From positions 5,736,389 through 5,800,388 of the forward strand of contig CM121343.1 of assembly GCA_051530055.1 (NCBI GenBank): a stretch of 64,000 nt of DNA, in the 5' to 3' direction. This DNA is from Neoechinorhynchus agilis. Lineage: Eukaryota > Animalia > Acanthocephala. The number at the start of each line of letters is the position of its first letter. Within the stretch, counting starts at the first letter, position 1. Shown piece after piece: positions 4,744 to 61,872 of the stretch. A model generated the notes under the pieces. That model had not been told where the DNA came from and did not search any database. It saw only the letters and a list, made by a program, of their open reading frames with translations. A program made the position numbers and the translations under genes.

Positions 4744-5248
4744 AAAATAAAATCATTTTAACTCTTTTCTACACGATATATAAAACAACCAACATATAGA
4801 AAGGAACTGAACAAGCGATCGCTGCATTAAAACTTGGGGAATTTGGAAATGTAGCAAACACATATTGCAAATCGTTCCGAGATTTGAAAGTTATGAAGCT
4901 GTTTTTCGCAGTGGGAGTTAGTTAACGCGACTTATTTTCAGTCGTCCCGAAAAGTTACTATAACCAATTTATTCAATGACTCTTTTTAACTTTAAGCATA
5001 ACATATAAGCAGAAACTTTAGACGACATTTTAAATTTTGTTTATTATTTAGATTTTATCTAAAGGAAACAATTCTCAATAGATACAAGACTTTTCCGTTA
5101 GGAACCTTATGGAATGCTCAAGAGGTTAGTCTAGTACTACAGCTTTCAAGAGGTAAATTTAGATTTCTGGATTTTCTCACAACGCTAATGAAGAACATAA
5201 ATCGATTTCATATATCATTTTCCTCGGAGTAAATTTGATTGTACGTTG

Positions 5249-6115
5249 GCGAATCCTGTCCGCGGTGTTATCGATACTCATTTATTTGAGAAATATTTCA
5301 CAAGGTTTTCCTTGCCTCTTCAGTCGCTATTGCTTGTAAGTTTTAAATGTGTGGATTGCGAATCCTGTCTCCGGTGTTATCGATACTCATTTATTTGAGA
5401 AATATTTCACAAGGTTTTCCTTGCTTCTTCAGTCGCTATTGCTTGTAAGTTTTAAATGTGTGGATTGCGAATCCTGTCTCCGGTGTTATCGATACTCATT
5501 TATTTGAGAAATATTTCACAAGGTTTTCCTTGCCTCTTCAGTCGCTATTGCTTGTAAGTTTTAAATGTGTGGATTGCGAATTCTGTCTCCGGTGTTATCG
5601 ATACTCATTTATTTGAGAAATATTTCACAAGGTTTTCCTTGCCTCTTCAGTCGCTATTGCTTGTAAGTTTTAAATGTGTGGATTGCGAATCCTGTCTCCG
5701 GTGTTATCGATACTCATTTATTTGAGAAATATTTCACAAGGTTTTCCTTGCTTCTTCAGTCGCTATTGCTTGTAAGTTTTAAATGTGTGGATTGCGAATC
5801 CTGTCTCCGGTGTTATCGATACTCATTTATTTGAGAAATATTTCACAAGGTTTTCCTTGCTTCTTCAGTCGCTATTGCTTGTAAGTTTTAAATGTGTGGA
5901 TTGCGAATCCTGTCTCCGGTGTTATCGATACTCATTTATTTGAGAAATATTTCACAAGGTTTTCCTTGCCTCTTCAGTCGCTATTGCTTGTAAGTTTTAA
6001 ATGTGTGGATTGCGAATTCTGTCCCCGGTGTTATCGATACTCATTTAATTGAGAAATATTTCACAAGGTTTTCCTTGCCTCTTCAGTCGCTATTGCTTGT
6101 AATTTTTTAAATATG
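5249..6115. repeat. Tandem array, 8 x 109 bp
   Basis: GCGAAT(C/T)CTGTC recurs at 5249, 5358, 5467, 5576, 5685, 5794, 5903 and 6012. Confidence 0.97.
5288..5327 (-). ncRNA. Minimal type I hammerhead ribozyme (one of 8 copies, one per 109-bp unit)
   Basis: GCGA-CUGAAGA-R-GCAAGG-AAAA-CCUUGU-GAAA-UA-UU-UCUC: full core, 6-bp stem II, palindromic GAAAUAUUUC stem III; stem I is weak (3 of 4 pairs). Confidence 0.7.
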
Positions 6116-6273
6116 TAAGTTCGTCATTTAAAAACTTGCGAAACAATAGCGAGCGAAGAGGCAAGGAAAACCTTGTGAAATATTTCTCAAATAAATGAGT
6201 ATCGATAACACTGGGGACATGATTCACCAACGTACAATAAATCGATTTTATCAGGTATACGTCTTATTTGCTC

Positions 6274-9200
6274 TTAATTTTTTACTACAGTGATATAGTC
6301 ATGCATCATTTCATTGAACAATTTGACAGTTATGTCCACGACATCGCTAACGTCTTGGGTCCAGTCAGACTCGGCTATCATGTCCAACAGTTCTGCGTAT
6401 TTTGGGTGATCGGCATCGCCATAGATCAGAACGGACTCGTATAGAATAATGGCGGCTTCTTGCCGAACTCGAGGTAATTCAGACGATAAAAGTTGTTTCA
6501 GCTTTTCTCCGATCGCCAAATCACATGACGTATTAAATTGGATACTTCGTATGACAATAAATGCCGTGCAGTGTAGCACTGAACTGTTCTTCAGCTGCAA
6601 CGCCGTCTCACATATAAAATCAATCATCCTTTTCATCTTGTGTCCTCCAACTTCATCCACAAACTGCTTCAAAACCTCATAGCTCATGAAGACACGAACA
6701 GTGATCAAGTACTTCAGTAACAATGATCCTTTATCTTTCAAAAGCAACATATACGAAAAAATTGAATCGAATATCTTCCCAATAACTTTCATATTATATT
6801 GGTGGCGTAGCGAGAATTCAAGCAAGCAATCTATAATATGAAAATCTTTACAAATTAAGTCAAAAAGATTTCCATATCCTATTCTTGTAATTTTTGATTG
6901 TGAAGATTGAAGGTTGCAAAGATGAGGTATAAGCCAGTTTAGAGGACCATACTCAACGATGCATATATCCATTATCTTATAATAAAAGCAGAGCTCATCT
7001 TGATTTCGGTTTTTAAGGTATTCGTCCCTCATTTTAGCAATCATTTCAATACTTTGAAGGATCGACCCGTACGTAGCGTCCAATTCGAACAAGGAAAACA
7101 AACCGCGAATATGAACCATGGCCGTATGATCGATTATGCATAGTCCTCCAACCAAGGCTGTTTTGAACATCCTCTGAACTTGATTTGGTATAAATTTGTA
7201 ATGTGGATTTATCGTAAGCCACATATTAAGAAAACTCAACAACTCATTGAACGCAGTTTCTCTTATAATTCTACCGACGTCACCGTTGAGTATTCGGGTC
7301 CTATCGTTCATCATATCAATGAAAAAGTCAAACGCGTACTCAAACAATTGAGTATTATCCGCCTGCATCGATTCGCATAAAATCTGACTAACACACTTGA
7401 TGCCCACGGCTCTTGAATTTATATTTTTCTTGTAAGTGAATTTTTCTCCAACAAGAGATACCAATGTTTCGATAACACGAGAATTCGATCGAAGGAAAGT
7501 TACTGGATAAGAATTGAATAATAAGAAATATCCAGCTCTTACGTGATCATCACTTGGAGAAACACTCTTAGTGCGGACCGAGTGATTCTCGAAGAAATCA
7601 GAGCAATGGGCAGTTTGAACGAGATATGCCTTCGCAGCTTTACAAGCTTCCGATTGAGTATCATCAGATTTGCATTCAATTGACTTAATCGGAGGAATCT
7701 TATGATGCAAGAAAATACAACTGTGGTGAATTTTCGCCTTAAAGAACTTCACTAAAGTAGATCATCCTGTAAACAACAGAACTATTCTTCGATAATTTAA
7801 CGAAAAACTAAATATATAATTGTCTATGAAGTGCAAATTTTCGATCAAAGGAATAAATTCAAACCAACCAGTAACTTATTTAATGCCTAAACGCCGCTTT
7901 TCAACGAAATTCATCTTTGAAATACTGAGTTTAAGTATCTGTAAAGCGTGGGATGCAACATGTTAGTCTCAAAAGACCTCTTCCATCCGTAATCGTGAGG
8001 ATATGCAATGAGAAGGAATGAACTTGAAAAGATGTCGTATTCGATTTTTGTGAAAAACATTAACAAAAATTGTAAGATTCCTCGTCGTAAAGATTAGATC
8101 CTCGCAATCAATCTGCAGCGTATTCTCGCGGTCCCAATCAAATCGCCGAAACTCACAAAGTCGTAAGATGAGGTTTGAGGCCGAATATAAGACATGACAA
8201 GCACTTAAGCACATAGCATCGAATGATTGAGCAATTATACGGAGGAGATTTTTCGATTTTAAGAACAAATCCTCGTTTTCATGTGAGCAGCACAAAAGTG
8301 CACCCAAAAGCATGACTCCACCATGCACGAGGGACACATCGCATATATCCAATTTTTCAATATCAAACAACTCATTGAGCAAAGGTTCGGACTTTTGGTA
8401 TACAATTTCGTAGAAATTAGCAGACACTCTAAACAACGACTGGGCAGCGTTAATTCGAACTTTGGGGTGCCAATGTCTGAGACATACGGTTACTAAGTGA
8501 TTTACGATCACCAGTCTGTAAGGATTTCGAAGAGTCAGGGAAACTCCAAAATCAAATGCAGAAGCAAGGGTCTTTACGTGAGCGGCATCAAGGTCCAAGA
8601 CCACATAATCTTCGTCTCGGTTATCGCGCATGCGACCAGCGAGTTCCTGATAAGCAGCAACCGAGGCTAATCGGCATCTTTCCTCCCGGTCAAATGAAGC
8701 AAGACATAGGAGAACGGAGTGCATTCGCTTCAATGTAGTTTTGTTTCTCACGTTGTAGGATCTCGCAATCGACCAAAGTCCAAAACATACACTGTCGCGG
8801 ACTCCTAATCCGCAGGATACATTTATCAATGCCCGCTCATAAAATGCAAAGTCGCACAAACGGTTTACAACAGAAGGTTGTGAAAATGCGTCGGATTCTT
8901 GTATTCAATCAACGACCAATGCTAATTACCTTCGAAGGATTTCTACTTACTAGATTAATAAAATTTAAAGCTGTAGGAAGCCTCAGGTTCTAAATGTGCT
9001 CGCTAGGAATGCAAAATATTCAATAATCGCCGTCTTTTTCACAATCCTCTTATGACAACTGTCTCAAGGGCGAACGGAGGAATCGTCTTGTGATAGCCCA
9101 GCTCCGCCAGGCAAAGACAACCTCCTAGGACTCTATTAACATCGGATTGGTGTGCAGTTAGTGAGTAAATCCTATTTAAGACTTTTGCAATTTCTTCTTT

Positions 9201-18397: not shown

Positions 18398-18733
18398 AAA
18401 GCGGTGGTTAACCTTTTAAAAGTCAAGAAGGCGACTAAGAACAAAAGGCACTCTGGATGCTTCTTACCCGATGTACCGTGCATTTCAGCATCTCCCTCCT
18501 GTGACATTGCGATTAGAACTGAATGAAGCGTTCACGAATCTTAAACCGCTCTCTCGTTCTGAAAATAGTCACATCGCCCGAATTTCAGCGATCAGCGTGT
18601 CTTTCTGACTGCTGCTGTCGTTTTGGTACGTCTATAAAGGTAATGACGGAGAAATCATAGCCGATTTTTCAGTAGGATTAAATCACACAATCGAGATTGT
18701 GCCGGAGAAATATCGATTTTTCAAACTTCATTC

Positions 18734-20258
18734 GGATCCTTAAATACCCCCGAGGAGGCGGGACTCATCAGTGAGTTTCCACTTTTTTAAAGTGTTCAAG
18801 TGACCATAATTAAAAGGCTGATTATTTTGCTTGGACATACAGCCCTCCGATTCATTGGTCAGGGAAACTCATGAAATTACTTGATGCCCTGAACCATGAA
18901 GTTATGAGTTTTGTATGCATCCCTCCGGATCCTTAAATACCCCCGAAGAGGCGGGACTCATCAGTGAGTTTCCACTTTTTAAAATGTTCAAGTGACCATA
19001 ATTAAAAGGCTGATTATTTTGCTTGGACATACCCCCGATTCATTGGTAGGGCTCATGAAATTACTTGATGCTGTGCGGTTATGAGTTTTGTACGCATCCC
19101 TCCGGATCCTTAAATACCCCCGAGGAGGCGGGACTCATCAGTGAGTTTCCACTTTTTTAAAGTGTTCAAGTGATCATAATTAAAAGGCTGATTATTTTGC
19201 TTGGACATACAACCCACCGATTCATTGGTCAGGGAAACTCATGAAATTACTTGATGCCCTGAACCATGCGGTTATGAGTTTTGTACGCATCCCTCCGGAT
19301 CCTCAAATACCCCCGAGGAGGCGGGACTCATCAGTGAGTTTCCACTTTTTTAAAGTGTTCAAGTGATCATAATTAAAAGGCTGATTATTTTGCTTGGACT
19401 CACCCGATTTGGGAAACTCTGAATCTTGATGCCTGACATGTTATGAGTTTTACATCCCGATCCTAAATCGAGGAGGCGGGCTCATCGTGGTTTCCTTTTT
19501 TAGTGTTCAGTGACATTAAAGGCTGATTATTTTGCTTGGACATACAACCCACCGATTTATTGGTCAGGGAAACTCATGAAATTACTTGATGCCCTGAACC
19601 ATGCGGTTATGAGTTTTGTACGCATCCCTCCGGATCCTCAAATACCCCCGAGGAGGCGGGACTCATCAGTGAGTTTCCACTTTTTTAAAGTGTTCAAGTG
19701 ATCATAATTAAAAGGCTGATTATTTTGCTTGGACATACAACCCACCGATTCATTGGTCAGGGAAACTCATGAAATTACTTGATGCCCTGAACCATGCGGT
19801 TATGAGTTTTGTACGCATCCCTCCGGATCCTTAAATACCCCCGAGGAGGCGGGACTCATCAGTGAGTTTCCACTTTTTTAAAGTGTTCAAGTGACCATAA
19901 TTAAAAGGCTGATTATTTTGCTTGGACATACAGCCCTCCGATTCATTGGTAAGGGAAACTCATGAAATTACTTGATGCCCTGAACCATGCGGTTATGAGT
20001 TTTGTACGCATCCCTCCGGATCCTCAAATACCCCCGAGGAGGCGGGACTCATCAGTGAGTTTCCACTTTTTTTATGTGTTCAAGTGATCATAATTAAAAG
20101 GCTGATTATTTTGCTTGGACATACAACCCACCGATTCATTGGTCAGGGAAACTCATGAAATTACTTGATGCCCTGAACCATGCGGTTATGAGTTTTGTAC
20201 GCATCCCTCCGGATCCTTAAATACCTCCAGAGGAGGCGGGACTCATCAATGAGTTTCC
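18734..20258. repeat. Tandem array, ~8 x 193 bp (units 2, 4 and 5 shortened by scattered deletions)
   Basis: GGATCCT(T/C)AAATAC recurs at 18734, 18927, 19104, 19297, ~19459, 19632, 19825, 20018 and 20211. Confidence 0.95.
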
Positions 20259-27015: not shown

Positions 27016-27068
27016 TTTATTAAAGACGTTTCGAACCTCGTCGGGTTCATCATCAGTTCTTAAATAAA
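27016..27068 (-). ncRNA. Minimal type I hammerhead ribozyme with a fully canonical core (family A)
   Basis: UUUAUUUAAGAA-CUGAUGA-U-GAACC-CGACGA-GGUUC-GAAA-C-GUC-UUUAAUAAA: 5-bp stem II, bulged 9-bp stem I, loop-less ACGU stem III; predicted cut 3' of 27025. Confidence 0.8.
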
Positions 27069-27114
27069 GTTTAGCTGTGAACAAAGTAGCGTCAATGAGA
27101 CATTGTTCGCACTT

Positions 27115-30100
27115 CACACATTTCATCCCATGTCCGGCACCGCCATGCAACTCGGTTCGAAAAATTAATGTTCTTCGTCGAAAGATGCCTTAACACTGAC
27201 CTATCAAACACATTAATTTGAAGATCGTCCAGACGATTATCGAATTCATGAAAAAGCTATTAAAGTCAAAAGTAGTTCAAGAACATTTGAATAAAGTCAA
27301 AATCGGTTGATTACATTGGCTCAGAAGCGCTCCATTCAGAGCTAAAAGTGTCCAGCGAGCATTTTGGAACCCTTAACCCGGGTTTCGCAGTAGATTTCAC
27401 ACATTTCATCCCATGTCCGGCACCGTTATGCAACTCGGTTGGAAAAATTAATGTTCTTCGTCGAAAGATGCCTTAACACTGACCTATCAAACGTATTAAA
27501 TTGTAGATCGTCCAGGCGATTATCGAATTCATGAAAAAGCTGTTAAAGTAAAAAGTAGTTCAAGAACATTTGAATAAAGTCAAAATCGGTTGATTACATT
27601 GGCTCAGAAGCGCTCCATTCAGAGCTAAAAGTGTCCAGCGAGCATTTTGGAACACTTAACCCGGGTTTCGCAGTAGATTTCACACATTTCATCCCATGTC
27701 CGGCACCGTTATGCAACTCGGTTGGAAAAATTAATGTTCTTCGTCGAAAGATGCCTTAACACTGACCTATCAAACGTATTAAATTGTAGATCGTCCAGGC
27801 GATTATCGAATTCATGAAAAAGCTGTTAAAGTAAAAAGTAGTTCAAGAACATTTGAATAAAGTCAAAATCGGTTGATTACATTGGCTCAGAAGCGCTCCA
27901 TTCAGAGCTAAAAGTGTCCAGCGAGCATTTTGGAACCCTTAACCCGGGTTTCGCAGTAGATTTCACACATTTCATCCCATGTCCGGCACCGTTATGCAAC
28001 TCGGTTGGAAAAATTAATGTTCTTCGTCGAAAGATGCCTTAACACTGACCTATCAAACACATTAATTTGAAGATCGTCCAGGCGATTATCGAATTCATGA
28101 AAAAGCTGTTAAAGTAAAAAGTAGTTCAAGAACATTTGAATAAAGTCAAAATCGGTTGATTACATTGGCTCAGAAGCGCTCCATTCAGAGCTAAAAGTGT
28201 CCAGCGAGCATTTTGGAACCCTTAACCCGGGTTTCGCAGTAGATTTCACACATTTCATCCCATGTCCGGCACCGTTATGCAACTCGGTTGGAAAATTAAT
28301 GTTCTTCGTCGAAAGATGCCTTAACACTGACCTATCAAACGTATTAAATTGTAGATCGTCCAGGCGATTATCGAATTCATGAAAAAGCTGTTAAAGTAAA
28401 AAGTAGTTCAAGAACATTTGAATAAAGTCAAAATCGGTTGATTACATTGGCTCAGAAGCGCTCCATTCAGAGCTAAAAGTGTCCAGCGAGCATTTTGGAA
28501 CCCTTAACCCGGGTTTCGCAGTAGATTTCACACATTTCATCCCATGTCCGGCACCGTTATGCAACTCGGTTGGAAAAATTAATGTTCTTCGTCGAAAGAT
28601 GCCTTAACACTGACCTATCAAACGTATTAAATTGTAGATCGTCCAGGCGATTATCGAATTCATGAAAAAGCTGTTAAAGTAAAAAGTAGTTCAAGAACAT
28701 TTGAATAAAGTCAAAATCGGTTGATTACATTGGCTCAGAAGCGCTCCATTCAGAGCTAAAAGTGTCCAGCGAGCATTTTGGAACCCTTAACCCGGGTTTC
28801 GCAGTAGATTTCACACATTTCATCCCATGTCCGGCACCGTTATGCAACTCGGTTGGAAAAATTAATGTTCTTCGTCGAAAGATGCCTTAACACTGACCTA
28901 TCAAACGTATTAAATTGTAGATCGTCCAGGCGATTATCGAATTCATGAAAAAGCTGTTAAAGTAAAAAGTAGTTCAAGAACATTTGAATAAAGTCAAAAT
29001 CGGTTGATTACATTGGCTCAGAAGCGCTCCATTCAGAGCTAAAAGTGTCCAGCGAGCATTTTGGAACCCTTAACCCGGGTTTCGCAGTAGATTTCACACA
29101 TTTCATCCCATGTCCGGCACCGTTATGCAACTCGGTTCGAAAAATTAATGTTCTTCGTCGAAAGATGCCTTAACACTGACCTATCAAACGTATTAAATTG
29201 TAGATCGTCCAGGCGATTATCGAATTCATGAAAAAGCTGTTAAAGTAAAAAGTAGTTCAAGAACATTTGAATAAAGTCAAAATCGGTTGATTACATTGGC
29301 TCAGAAGCGCTCCATTCAGAGCTAAAAGTGTCCAGCGAGCATTTTGGAACCCTTAACCCGGGTTTCGCAGTAGATTTCACACATTTCATCCCATGTCCGG
29401 CACCGTTATGCAACTCGGTTGGAAAAATTAATGTTCTTCGTCGAAAGATGCCTTAACACTGACCTATCAAACGTATTAAATTGTAGATCGTCCAGGCGAT
29501 TATCGAATTCATGAAAAAGCTGTTAAAGTAAAAAGTAGTTCAAGAACATTTGAATAAAGTCAAAATCGGTTGATTACATTGGCTCAGAAGCGCTCCATTC
29601 AGAGCTAAAAGTGTCCAGCGAGCATTTTGGAACCCTTAACCCGGGTTTCGCAGTAGATTTCACACATTTCATCCCATGTCCGGCACCGTTATGCAACTCG
29701 GTTGGAAAAATTAATGTTCTTCGTCGAAAGATGCTTAACACTGACCTATCAAACGTATTAAATTGTAGATCGTCCAGGCGATTATCGAATTCATGAAAAA
29801 GCTGTTAAAGTCAAAAGTAGTTCAAGAACATTTGAATAAAGTCAAAATCGGTTGATTACATTGGCTCAGAAGCGCTCCATTCAGAGCTAAAGGTGTCCAG
29901 CGAGCATTTTCGAACACTTAACTCGGGTTTCGCAGTAGATTTCACACATTTCATCCCATGTCCGGCACCGTTATGCAACTCGGTTCGAAAAATTAATGTT
30001 CTTCGTCGAAAGATGCCTTAACACTGACCTATCAAACGTATTAAATTGTAGATCGTCCAGGCGATTATCGAATTCATGAAAAAGCTGTTAAAGTAAAAAG

Positions 30101-30522
30101 TAGTTCAAGAACATTTGAATAAAGTCAAAATCGGTTGATTACATTGGCTCAGAAGCGCTCCATTCAGAGCTAAAAGTGTCCAGCGAGCATTTTGGAACCC
30201 TTAACCCGGGTTTCGCAGTAGATTTCACACATTTCATCCCATGTCCGGCACCGTTATGCAACTCGGTTGGAAAAATTAAGTTCTTCGTCGAAAGATGCCT
30301 TAACACTGACCTATCAAACGTATTAAATTGTAGATCGTCCAGGCGATTATCGAATTCATGAAAAAGCTGTTAAAGTCAAAAGTAGTTCAAGAACATTTGA
30401 ATAAAGTCAAAATCGGTTGATTACATTGGCTCAGAAGCGCTCTATTCAGAGCTAAAGGTGTCCAGCGAGCATTTTGGAACCCTTAACCCGGGTTTCGCAG
30501 TAGATTTCACACATTTCATCCC
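27115..30522. repeat. Tandem array, 12 x 283 bp, highly homogeneous
   Basis: CACACATTTCATCCC recurs at 27115, 27398, 27681 and so on to ~30508; the repeated 61-aa ORFs in the track reflect it. Confidence 0.97.
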
Positions 30523-36687: not shown

Positions 36688-39514
36688 CTCAAACTCAGCT
36701 CCTACTCTCCTTCTCTCTCCTATTCTTCATTTAGGATTCAGTGGTCTCAAGAAACTAAATTTATCCGTATAACAGTACAACAGTTTGCATGTGAAATAAA
36801 AAAGGGGTCGTTTACTGGTCTTATTTAGCAAAATGACCGAAACGAACAAAAAGAAATGTATGATTCTCAAACGTAATTTTAAGAGAGGGAGAGAATGGGT
36901 ATTAAGGAGCTTAGAGATCACTCAAAATCAGCTCCTACTCTTCTTCTCTCTCCTATTCTTCATTTAGGATTCAGTAGAGTCTCAAGCAACTAAATTTATC
37001 CGTATAACAGTACAACAGTTTGCATGTGAAATAAAAAAGGGGTCGTTTACTGGTCTTATTTAGCAAAATGACCGAAACGAACAAAAAGAAATGTATGATT
37101 CTCAAACGTAATTTTAAGAGAGGGAGAGAATGGGTATTAAGGAGCTTAGAGATCACTCAAAATCAGCTCCTACTCTTCTTCTATATCCTATTCTTCATTT
37201 AGGATTCAGTAGAGTCTCAAGCAACTAAATTTATCCGTATAACAGTACAACAGTTTGCATGTGAAATAAAAAAGTGGTCGTTTACTGGTCTTATTTAAAA
37301 ATGACCGAAACGAACAAAAAGAAATGTGATTCTCAAACGTAATTTTAAGAGAGGGAGAGAATGGGTATTAAGGAGCTTAGAGATCACTCAAATCAGCTCC
37401 TACTCTTCTTCTCTCTCCTATTCTTCATTTAGGATTCAGTGGTCTCAAGCAACTAAATTTATCCGTATAAAGTACAACAGTTTGCATGTGAAATAAAAAA
37501 AGGGGTCGTTTACTGGTCTTATTTAGCAAAATGACCGAAACGAACAAAAAGATATGATTCTCAAACGTAATTTTAAGAGAGGGAGAGAATGGGTATTAAG
37601 GAGCTTAGAGATCACTCAAAATCAGCTCCTACTCTCCTTCTCTCTCCTATTCTTCATTTAGGATTCAGTAGAGTCTCAAGCAACTAAATTTATCCGTATA
37701 ACAGTACAACAGTTTGCATGTGAAATAAAAAAGGGGTCGTTTACTGGTCTTATTTAGCAAAATGACCGAAACGGACAAAAAGAAATGTATGATTCTCAAA
37801 CGTAATTTTAAGAAAGAGGGAGAGAATGGGTATTAAGGAGCTTAGAGATCACTCAAAATCAGCTCCTACTCTTCTTCTCTCTCCTATTCTTCATTTAGGA
37901 TTCAGTAGAGTCTCAAGCAACTAAATTTATCCGTATAACAGTACAACAGTTTGCATGTGAAATAAAAAAGGGGTCGTTTACTGGTCTTATTTAGCAAAAT
38001 GATCGAAACGGACAAAAAGAAATGTATGATTCTCAAACGTAATTTTAAGAAAGAGGGAGAGAATGGGTATTAAGGAGCTTAGAGATCACTCAAAATCAGC
38101 TCCTACTCTCCTTCTCTCTCCTATTCTTCATTTAGGATTCAGTAGAGTCTCAAGCAACTAAATTTATCCGTATAACAGTACAACAGTTTGCATGTGAAAT
38201 AAAAAAGGGGTCGTTTACTGGTCTTATTTAGCAAAATGATCGAAACGGACAAAAAGAAATGTATGATTCTCAAACGTAATTTTAAGAAAGAGGGAGAGAA
38301 TGGGTATTAAGGAGCTTAGAGATCACTCAAAATCAGCTCCTACTCTCCTTCTCTCTCCTATTCTTCATTTAGGATTCAGTAGTCTCAGGCAACTAAATTT
38401 ATCCGTATAACAGTACAACAGTTTGCATGTGAAATAAAAAAGGGGTCGTTTACTGGTCTTATTTAGCAAAATGACCGAAACGAACAAAAAGAAATGTATG
38501 ATTCTCAAACGTAATTTTAAGAAGAGGGAGAGAATGGGTATTAAGGAGCTTAGAGATCACTCAAAATCAGCTCCTACTCTCCTTCTCTCTCCTATTCTTC
38601 ATTTAGGATTCAGTAGAGTCTCAAGCAACTAAATTTATCCGTATAACAGTACAACAGTTTGCATGTGAAATAAAAAAGGGGTCGTTTACTGGTCTTATTT
38701 AGCAAAATGATCGAAACGGACAAAAAGAAATGTATGATTCTCAAACGTAATTTTAAGAAGAGGGAGAGAATGGGTATTAAGGAGTTTAGAGATCACTCAA
38801 AATCAGCTCCTACTCTCCTTCTCTTCCTATTCTTCATTTAGGATTCAGTGGTCTCAAGCAACTAAATTTATCCGTATAACAGTACAACAGTTTGCATGTG
38901 AAATAAAAAAGGGGTCGTTTACTGGTCTTATTTAGCAAAATGACCGAAACGGACAAAAAGAAATGTATGATTCTCAAACGTAATTTTAAGAGAGGGAGAA
39001 TGGGTATTAAGGAGCTTAGAGATCACTCAAAATCAGCTCCTACTCTCCTTCTCTCTCCTATTCTTCATTTAGGATTCAGTAGAGTCTCAAGCAACTAAAT
39101 TTATCCGTATAACAGTACAACAGTTTGCATGTGAAATAAAAAAGGGGTCGTTTACTGGTCTTATTTAGCAAAATGATCGAAACGGACAAAAAGAAATGTA
39201 TGATTCTCAAACGTAATTTTAAGAAAGAGGGAGAGGATGGGTATTAAGGAGTTTAGAGATCACTCAAAATCAGCTCCTACTCTTCTTCTATATCCTATTC
39301 TTTATTTAGGATTCAGTAGAGTCTCAAGCAACTAAATTTATCCGTATAACAGTACAACAGTTTGCATGTGAAATAAAAAAGGGGTCGTTTACTGGTCTTA
39401 TTTAGCAAAATGATCGAAACGGACAAAAAGAAATGTATGATTCTAAAGGGTAGTTTTAAGAAAGAGAGGGAGAGAATGGGTATTAAAGAGCCTAGACATC
39501 GTTCAAACTCAGCT
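36688..39514. repeat. Tandem array, 12 x ~235 bp
   Basis: CTCAAA(A/C)TCAGCTCCTACTCT recurs every 228-237 bp. Confidence 0.97.
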
Positions 39515-59205: not shown

Positions 59206-60854
59206 ATGAACAACTTTACAAGAACATCTACTGCAGTTGATAGTGTAAAATTACCGCCTGGACGCTCGGTCATGAAATCACTAGACTTCTCGAACTTAAA
59301 GAAGCATACTCCTATAATTGCATGATTGATTGGTTTTGGGAAAAAGATTAGCTGTTTAAAAACGGAGATATTTTCTCAATGGAATCAAACAACCATTACT
59401 GTATCTTCAAGAGAAAATCCTTCGGGGTGATTTTGATGTGGTGATCATAACCCAAGGACGCAGGATTACGAGCGGAAACCTCGAGAATGGCTACAAACTT
59501 CTTAAGTGACTTGGACGAGGCTTCCTAATCTTTCGATGAACAACTTTACAAGAACATCTACTGCAGTTGATAGTGTAAAATTACCGCCTGGACGCTCGGT
59601 CATGAAATCACTAGACTTCTCGAACTTTAAGAAGCATACTCCTATAATTGCATGATTGATTGGTTTTGGGAAAAAGATTAGCTGTTTAAAAACGGAGATA
59701 TTTTCTCAATGGAATCAAACAACCATTACTGTATCTTCAAGAGAAAATCCTTCGGGATGATTTTGATGTGGTGATCATAACCCAAGGATGCAGGATTACG
59801 AGCGGAAACCTCGAGAATGGCTACAAACTTCTTAAGTGACTTGGACGAGGCTTCCTAATCTTTCGATGAACAACTTTACAAGAACATCTACTGCAGTTGA
59901 TAGTGTAAAATTACCGCCTGGACGCTCGGTCATGAAATCACTAGACTTCTCGAACTTTAAGAAGCATACTCCTATAATTGCATGATTGATTGGTTTTGGG
60001 AAAAAGATTAGCTGTTTAAAAACGGAGATATTTTCTCAATGGAATCAAACAACCATTACTGTATCTTCAAGAGAAAATCCTTCGGGATGATTTTGATGTG
60101 GTGATCATAACCCAAGGATGCAGGATTACGAGCGGAAACCTCGAGAATGGCTACAAACTTCTTAAGTGACTTGGACGAGGCTTCCTAATCTTTCGATGAA
60201 CAACTTTACAAGAACATCTACTGCAGTTGATAGTGTAAAATTACCGCCTGGACGCTCGGTCATGAAATCACTAGACTTCTCGAACTTTAAGAAGCATACT
60301 CCTATAATTGCATGATTGATTGGTTTTGGGAAAAAGATTAGCCGTTTAAAAACGGAGATATTTTCTCAATGGAATCAAACAACCATTACTGTATCTTCAA
60401 GAGAAAATCCTTCGGGATGATTTTGATGTGGTGATCATAACCCAAGGATGCAGGATTACGAGCGGAAACCTCGAGAATGGCTACAAACTTCTTAAGTGAC
60501 TTGGACGAGGCTTCCTAATCTTTCGATGAACAACTTTACAAGAACATCTACTGCAGTTGATAGTGTAAATTACCGCCTGGACGCTCGGTCATGAAATCAC
60601 TAGACTTCTCGAACTTTAAGAAGCATACTCCTATAATTGCATGATTGATTGGTTTTGGGAAAAAGATTAGCCGTTTAAAAACGGAGATATTTTCTCAATG
60701 GAATCAAACAACCATTACTGTATCTTCAAGAGAAAATCCTTCGGGATGATTTTGATGTGGTGATCATAACCAAAGGATGCAGCATTACGAGAGGAAACCT
60801 CGAGAATGGCTACAGACTTCTTAAGTGACTTGGACGAGGCTTCCTAATCTTTCG
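59206..60854. repeat. Tandem array, 5 x 330 bp
   Basis: ATGAACAACTTTACAAG at 59206, 59536, 59866, 60196 and 60526. Confidence 0.97.
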
Positions 60855-61872
60855 AACTATCGGATTGTGATTATCATGTCCGTTATCGCACTGTGGACCA
60901 ACATACAGAAGTGACGACCTCATTACCACCCCCCCCTCGCGCGCTCGGATATGTTTGTGGTTCGCTATTTGCGCGCTATTCCACAGCTTCCATCCAGTTT
61001 AGTTACGACTTTGCGGACGGTTTCAGAAAATGGACGCTGATGAAGTATGTGTTTTGTCGGGTATTCAGGACGATCAGAGTACCATTCAACTTTTCGAGAA
61101 GCAGGTTAGATCGTCTTCTGAGGGATTTGTTTGAACTCTTTTTAGGATCATTATCTTTCGTTCGGTTGCAGTGCCATTAAGCTTGCCAAGCACTATTTTA
61201 AATCGCCGACTGCTTTGTCAACCACAAATTTGGAAGGTAACTTCTCCTCATTCGCACAGTGCAACTTAATTTCATACAGGTCAGTCGGTGAAATCGTGTT
61301 GTATCAAAAAATCAGCGCTGGAGAGCGTTTTGCACTTCATATTGAACCGAATGCTGTGTCGGGTGGAGATTTGGAGTGAAACTAAGCAACTGAAAAAGAA
61401 ACTTTTATGTATAGTTAGTTTAATGATCTTTGCCTTATTATGAAGATCATCTACATTATTGGCATCACCCGGAAACATTGGTGAAATCGAGGAGTATTTA
61501 GCCACAATGAATCTTGATTCAACCGACATTCATTCGTTTTATGGAGATGGCGACATTTTGTCGTTTTGCGCTAAAACCGATGATACAGCCAAAGGCCATC
61601 GACATGGAACCGTAAGTTCTGCCTACCTTGTCCTCTTAAATTTCTTACCTTACGTTGATTTGCTCCAAAAAGCAATACTAAAATCCCATCAATTATTGAT
61701 TTTGTAGCACGTCCTAAGAATAATTAGTTTAAAATTTTTTGTCATGGATATATATTTTTTGTTTGGTAATGAGAAATAGAGATTAAAAGGTAGGTCAGGA
61801 GGGTGGCACCCTGTTTCTACCTTTTAGACCTGAAAATGTCTGACGAAATTTTGTGAAAGGAAATCAATAAAT

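Follow-up and report, generated by a model that had tools for sequence, protein, structure and literature searches.

A 109-nt hammerhead repeat array in an acanthocephalan genome, probably derived from the end of a Penelope-like element

Minimal hammerhead ribozymes have been described in the terminal repeats of Penelope-like elements (PLEs). They have one unpaired nucleotide between A9 and position 10.1, a helix II of 6-8 bp, a G10.1-C11.1 pair, a stem I of 4-5 bp and no helix III, in place of which is a palindrome for pairing between two copies, and pairs of motifs on opposite strands are frequent (PMC4209133). In vitro they cleave poorly, and only as dimers (PMC4209133). In PLE insertions, partial tandem copies make up pseudo-LTRs, the 5' end bears a copy that is inverted and 5'-truncated, and a tail of 30-40 bp is confined to one end (PMC8557442); in Adineta vaga the target duplication is 9 bp, the tail is 31 bp and the ORF's first 12 codons fall within the pseudo-LTR (PMC3846280). 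The tail sits between two internal start sites of reverse transcription, and in vitro insertion of an anole PLE needed no hammerhead cleavage and gave no reads that ended at the cut site (PMC11167929). A current question is whether PLEs gave rise to the animal retrozymes and by what means these are mobilised, and a 2026 preprint argues for such a descent from phylogeny alone (Li, Clavereau & Pollet, bioRxiv 10.64898/2026.07.22.740005).

The locus described here lies within a 64,000-nt stretch of DNA from Neoechinorhynchus agilis (the window), and judged by its sequence the array at 5249-6116 is a small member of the class of hammerhead repeats derived from PLEs. It is like the animal non-LTR retrozymes (PMC7229834; bioRxiv 10.64898/2026.07.22.740005) in that its repeats are tandem and non-coding, are low in G+C and carry a type I hammerhead each, and in that its family forms dispersed arrays with target duplications of more than 4 bp, occurs alongside autonomous PLEs and is homologous to PLE terminal repeats. 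It is unlike them in its unit length (109-118 nt here vs 170-400 nt; PMC7229834), in its hammerhead, which is of the minimal PLE type without loop-loop contacts, and in a monomer that is not highly self-paired. The size of 109 nt is not exceptional, since the consensus lengths of retrozymes given in the 2026 preprint range from 51 to 972 bp. What the array adds is a direct link to a coding partner, a copy of a probable spliced leader at the start of every unit, and a set of stem I variants that occur naturally.

The hammerhead motif in each unit and in related families

A 109-bp tandem repeat was reported at 5249-6116 by Tandem Repeats Finder, with 8.0 copies, 98% matches and 0 indels. The first-pass annotation of this DNA had proposed eight head-to-tail units with intact cores, and this was confirmed when the array was read unit by unit; all eight units are on the minus strand and read CUGAAGA, with C3 at 5323, 5432, 5541, 5650, 5759, 5868, 5977 and 6086. 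By unit alignment, each holds a leader-like 5' part, the minimal hammerhead and what corresponds to the start codon of a PLE with about its first 12 codons, and AATAAA is present in each. The order of the motif on the minus strand is GCGA (stem I), CUGAAGA, one extra nucleotide, a hairpin, GAA, AUAU, U and UCUC. The helix II hairpin of every unit is GCAAGG-AAAA-CCUUGU (6 bp, with an AAAA loop) and is followed by GAAAUAUU. The A/G polymorphism between units falls on the nucleotide after A9, where the first-pass annotation had placed it; this nucleotide is A in the units with C3 at 5432, 5759 and 5868, and G in the other five. The first of the eight motifs found by the descriptor search spans 5286-5329 (minus strand), with the rest at steps of +109, and its predicted cut lies between 5292 and 5291, GAAAUAUU^UCUC.

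The motif appears to be a genuine minimal PLE hammerhead in kind, with self-cleavage predicted only. It shares with the published examples (PMC4209133) the type I arrangement, the unpaired nucleotide that separates A9 from 10.1, a helix II of 6 bp, a 4-bp stem I, AUAU at 15.1-16.1, the lack of helix III and loop 3, the location in a PLE terminal repeat and the pairing of motifs on opposite strands. It differs from them at two pairs: 10.1-11.1 is G·U, and stem I (GCGA/UCUC) forms three of its four pairs, with a C·U mismatch at 2.3-1.3. The G·U pair is also present in the autonomous copy, and is G-C in 33 of the 165 units of the repeat family and in all other families. The core CUGANGA ... GAAA, with H17 not G, is found in 8 of 8 window units and in 141 of the 165. 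One unpaired nucleotide between A9 and 10.1 is present in every window unit and in every motif of the other PLE families found in the genome, and the palindrome in place of helix III is AUAU in the array and AAUU, AGCU or ACGU in other families. Two other registers were rejected. An alternative cut at GAGUA^UCG has a better stem I on paper but lacks an acceptable helix III, and both the autonomous copy and the other families favour the AUAU-U register; a second register that the descriptor allows (AU palindrome, A17) is weaker.

The full descriptor demanded the core, a helix II of at least 4 bp, GAAA, the palindrome and H17, with no demand on stem I, and its chance rate was 0.14 matches per dinucleotide-shuffled window, falling to 0.01 when three of the four stem I pairs were added. 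No Rfam hammerhead match was obtained in the window at gathering thresholds, nor on 1401 or 281 bases at E values up to 10, and RF00163 (Hammerhead_1) had no match anywhere in the whole genome. By itself such a result would speak for a motif due to chance, but it is probably because the motifs are minimal, Penelope-type hammerheads that lack helix III, and the silence of Rfam was hence not counted against the motif.

Covariation was determined for an alignment of 18 motifs, taken from fetched loci and representing at least 11 PLE families of this genome with quite different helix sequences. Paired cells made up 84.8% of the total vs 52.5% in shuffles, and the covariation score was 0.76 vs 0.20 (0/500 shuffles reached 0.76, and slid controls gave 0.05-0.21), figures which are partly circular for helix II and the palindrome, as these were demanded beforehand by the descriptor, and which carry some bias from the entry of multi-copy families by their best-paired copy. 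Stem I is the sole unbiased test, and across families each of its four inner pairs forms in 78-100% of cases and comes in 4-5 pair types, while pairs 5-6 are unpaired. The inner pair of the palindrome has 4 pair types. Within the unit family, three fully paired forms of stem I are present, UCGA/UCGA (that of the coding element), GCGA/UCGC and GAGA/UCUC, and the commonest form is the mismatched GCGA/UCUC of the array; double compensatory changes in helix II were found in two units of the family. Within the family the core is no more conserved than N7, loop II or the extra nucleotide, and conservation at this level therefore says nothing on selection. This series of three fully paired forms and one mismatched form suits an experimental test of whether hammerhead cleavage matters for spread.

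Folding of the array sequence is less favourable to cleavage. The double-hammerhead fold of a dimer lies 10.6 kcal/mol above the minimum free energy, and the 3' strand of stem I is also part of a local CUCA/UGAG hairpin. The circular 109-mer folds at -8.3 kcal/mol (z = -0.15 against shuffles), no better than shuffled sequence, and no support for a viroid-like rod was seen in the folds of the monomer or the circle. For the array in the window, cutting into 109-nt monomers and circularisation look weak in these models. As a matter of judgement, and not of calculation, the chance of measurable self-cleavage by transcripts of the array falls a little short of even odds, and abundant circles in vivo seem rather unlikely.

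The insert and its Penelope-like relatives

The array is part of a larger insert, which is flanked by the direct repeat ATAAATCGATTT at 5197-5208 (left copy) and 6237-6248 (right copy). The direct-repeat comparison bears out the earlier description of an element between target-site duplications; the outer AT of ATAAATCGATTT may be derived from the element, which would give a duplication of 10-12 bp. Beside the left copy, at 5209-5237, is a 29-nt PLE 'tail' which forms the minus-strand 3' end of the element, terminates in GATATATG and is found at this end of the insert only. It was recognised by its one-ended conservation in 14 solo foldbacks and by its homology to codons about 14-25 of the autonomous PLE ORF, and it agrees with the tails of 30-40 bp in the literature (PMC8557442, PMC3846280, PMC11167929). 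Next to it, at 5238-5249, the terminal arm ends, with the minus-strand sequence CCAACGTACAAT. This is the 'no-tail' boundary; the inverted arm stops at the same sequence, and one copy of the PLE (at L075) stops at this point as well. The terminal unit has a 40-nt 3' extension, consisting of CGTACAAT and the 29-nt tail, that is missing from the repeat unit. Beyond the direct units, the leader of the 5'-most one (6094-6125, minus strand) is nearer to the genomic spliced-leader sequence than are the leaders of the internal units. Inverted-repeat comparison places the fold point between the direct and inverted copies at 6117-6140, and the inverted, tail-less copy of the unit at 6141-6241 on the plus strand, where it is 101 nt long and 92% complementary to the left end. 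Its core reads GCGAAGA at 6153-6159, and the dead core that had been noticed earlier in the single inverted copy is thus present.

The inverted copy, direct copies, one-ended tail and target duplication together are the insertion signature of PLEs. As in the insertions of Adineta vaga and other animal PLEs (PMC3846280, PMC8557442), the inverted copy is at the 5' end and is followed by direct copies, the tail of about 30 nt is optional and at one end, the target duplications are short (8-10 bp there, 9-14 bp here) and the repeat covers about 12 first codons. Unlike those insertions, there is no ORF here and the direct part consists of 8 x 109-nt units.

The array itself is one more copy of an abundant repeat. 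A query of three units gave at least 118 matches in the 46-Mb assembly, most of which are solo foldbacks, with two inverted arms of about 100 nt set 10-40 nt apart, and about 12 loci hold arrays with periods of 87, 107, 109, 118, 209 or 225 bp. The ends of the foldbacks differ, as one stops at ATTGTACGTTGG and the other runs about 29 conserved nt further to CATATATG; 14 solo copies show conservation of this one-sided tail. More than 20 copies are flanked by target duplications, of 9-14 bp, including the whole arrays L049, L052, L054 and L058 and that of the window. At two loci, L036 (period 225) and L039 (period 209), it is whole foldbacks, together with their own flanking duplication, that are tandemly repeated, which is a second route to arrays in this family.

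A coding partner for this family was found among the GIY-YIG loci of the genome, of which there are at least 150 matches above the curated Pfam cut-off. At L071, L075 and L080, a stretch of 126 nt is 89% identical to the terminal unit and tail of the window. At L071 the 126 nt begin 49 nt upstream of the start codon of a 745-aa ORF, which encodes RVT_1 (E = 4e-12) as well as a C-terminal GIY-YIG domain, and extend 76 nt into it. Because the homology spans the start of the ORF, the ATG in each 109-nt unit corresponds to the start codon of the PLE and the tail to codons about 14-25. The sampled autonomous copies are 11% divergent from the non-coding family, and given this divergence its true source may be another PLE subfamily. 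The evidence for descent is in this case anatomical and comes from one genome, in which a hammerhead repeat matches the terminal module of a coding PLE at 89% identity and bears all the marks of PLE insertion.

A foldback or MITE-type DNA transposon, with one terminal inverted repeat expanded to a satellite and a hammerhead-like motif that is coincidental, was considered first. The inverted arms of about 100 nt with their 92% complementarity, the many solo copies that are plain hairpins and the fact that the only Rfam matches near the array are to generic long-hairpin miRNA-precursor models would all suit such an element, as would the likeness to satellites of foldback or MITE origin, in which a long hairpin-forming insert has one arm tandemly repeated. 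The ends of the window insert are however asymmetric, with the tail on one side, and the element has the features of one derived from RNA, with a copy of the spliced leader at the fold and 89% identity to the region before and into an ORF for reverse transcriptase and GIY-YIG endonuclease. The target duplications also vary between 9 and 14 bp, and the motif class covaries across families. This explanation, which is most improbable, was dropped on account of the asymmetry of the ends, the PLE homology and the joining of the leader to other sequences, and the insert was not counted as a member of that class.

Leader sequences, unit junctions and the origin of the array

The coding PLE lacks the 30-33 nt at the 5' end of the arms and instead has a good 3' splice acceptor, CCATTTTAG, immediately before stem I. 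The same 5' leader turns up fused to hammerheads from other PLE families, and to unrelated sequences as well, and in 23 places in the genome it is followed by a GTAAGT donor. Two of the loci concerned, L088 and L090, have an Sm-like AAUUUGG about 190 nt downstream of the leader. Each unit of the array therefore seems to be headed by a copy of what is probably a trans-spliced leader, a feature that is unmentioned in the PLE papers PMC3846280 and PMC8557442. The presence of this copy at the start of each unit points to a linear, processed RNA and template jumping, not to rolling circles.

Several further observations were made on the leader. L088 (G000:C1:1369280-1369300, minus) and L090 (G000:C1:1422737-1422757, plus) are probable spliced-leader RNA genes, in which the 33-nt leader ends in ACAAGCA and is followed by the GTAAGT donor, and a cluster of a variant with an ACAAACA end is located on C2, at 2.60-2.87 Mb. 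At L081, L082 and L087 the leader is fused to sequences other than PLEs, with an ATG soon after it in some, and these fusions are possible retrocopies of trans-spliced host mRNAs. At the 5' end of the array L056 (G000:C3:5506800-5508600), the leader is replaced by the unspliced acceptor context, CCATTTTAG before stem I, in both the 5'-most unit and the inverted arm, and stem I there has the GCGA form; an unspliced template was therefore also copied.

The junctions between units are shared between loci. The ancestral unit is 118 nt long, and its junction, where the sequence that just precedes the no-tail boundary meets a diverged leader, is present in 10 loci. The 109-nt unit differs by a 9-nt deletion at this junction and was found only in the window and in six consecutive units of the array L058, 720 kb away on the same contig. 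As these two arrays each have their own target duplication, at least one junction has travelled with the template, and arrays beget arrays via RNA.

The best explanation, to which we give a probability of roughly 0.8, is that the insert at 5209-6238 is the product of a single retrotransposition of a short, non-coding derivative of a PLE with a C-terminal GIY-YIG domain. The RNA would have had two parts, a leader of about 33 nt, most likely trans-spliced and added at the AG acceptor before stem I, and the 3' recognition module of the PLE, comprising the minimal hammerhead, the start codon and about 25 first codons, as far as the internal sites at which reverse transcription starts. This linear template would have been copied in trans by the reverse transcriptase and endonuclease of a PLE, giving in order a target duplication, an inverted tail-less copy, direct copies, the tail and a target duplication, which is the usual layout of the family. 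The repeat junction, between the region of the 3' start sites and the 5' end of the leader, would first have been made by a template jump between RNAs and then inherited, since the same derived junction occurs at 10 or more loci. The template would already have held at least 2 units, to which unequal exchange at the site may later have added more. The anatomy, the PLE homology, the covariation of the motif class, the target duplications and the shared junctions are observed; what we infer is the leader's identity, the template jump and the mobilisation in trans. The array is in these terms a concatemer of processed short RNAs from the end of a PLE, and in this sense is retrozyme-like.

The first-pass annotation had proposed a retrozyme-like RNA, with the array as an integrated rolling-circle cDNA. 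The first part stands insofar as there is a family of tandem hammerhead repeats that spreads as multimers; the second is not supported. In a true retrozyme cycle, neighbouring hammerheads would cut the transcripts into 109-nt monomers, these would be ligated to circles, and the array would be a cDNA made by rolling-circle copying. The cores are indeed intact in all eight tandem units and the motif class is real, arrays of the family are present at at least 11 loci with their own target duplications, circular RNAs are known from animal retrozymes (PMC7229834), and these have been proposed to derive from the ends of PLEs (bioRxiv 10.64898/2026.07.22.740005). The terminal 40 nt (CGTACAAT and tail) would nevertheless be absent from any circle of one unit, and neither the inverted arm at the other end nor the distinct, fresher leader of the 5'-most unit is expected from one. 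The order of the variants along the array, G,A,G,G*,A,A,G,G* (where A and G are the states of the polymorphism and the asterisk marks a GAATTC variant), is impossible from a monomer circle, as each variant recurs in non-adjacent units. A rolling-circle origin is unlikely, given that a linear template is indicated by the tail and the inverted arm and that non-adjacent units share variants. The energies given above for the circle, unlike those of the highly self-paired retrozyme RNAs, and for the double hammerhead also count against this cycle, as does the insertion of the anole PLE without a need for cleavage (PMC11167929). Such a variant order could instead come from a multimeric template that was heterogeneous, or from unequal exchange once the insert was in place.

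The possibility of such exchange leads to another explanation, according to which the array is an inert satellite that came in as a dimer or a short multimer and reached its eight units by unequal crossing-over, with the hammerhead as an inactive, decaying relic. The A/G and GAATTC variants of the array form a four-unit higher-order pattern, and two-unit higher-order repeats are present in the arrays L056 and L049; the mismatch in stem I, the unfavourable fold and the low in vitro activity published for minimal PLE hammerheads (PMC4209133) are equally in keeping with a relic. However, 8/8 cores are intact and the units are 98% alike, which indicates a young array. We regard inertness as quite conceivable, at somewhat less than even chances, and it overlaps the retrotransposition of a short PLE derivative, from which it differs only on the mode of growth and on activity.

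A bolder reading takes each unit to be the complete copy of a mature RNA of about 118 nt, capped by the spliced leader and excised from the terminal repeat of a PLE. This is doubtful, and is put forward tentatively. If it were true, the family would catch the birth of a retrozyme, in which trans-splicing just upstream of the hammerhead and internal initiation of reverse transcription set the bounds of a minimal mobile RNA, its copies become linked head to tail through a template jump, and spread then takes place as multimers. Among animal RNAs processed by hammerheads, whether linear or circular, those made from the transcripts of the multimers would be the smallest known.

Genomic surroundings and other hammerheads in the window

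The insert is adjacent to a TBCD-like gene on the same strand. The last long ORF of this gene is at 6274-7752 (minus strand), and was assigned from matches to the ARM_TBCD domain on the next two ORFs upstream. Its stop codon, at 6274-6276, is 25 nt from the insert and the array is in sense orientation to the gene, so that the array is probably in, or at the end of, its 3' UTR. Further afield, nine of the 12 arrays of the family are within 1.4 Mb of G000:C3 (about 5.4-6.8 Mb), each with its own target duplication; this clustering could be due to local reinsertion or to a repeat-rich region.

The other tandem arrays in the window were searched for the motif. No hammerhead core was found on either strand in those at 43-579, 18733-20258, 36688-39514 and 59206-60855 (periods of 184, 193, 237 and 330 bp, respectively), nor in the 283-bp units of a 12-copy array at 27113-30522. 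Adjoining the left side of this last array, at 27019-27062 on the minus strand, is a second, unrelated minimal hammerhead, which has the core CUGAUGA, one extra U, a helix II of 5 bp, an ACGU palindrome and C17.
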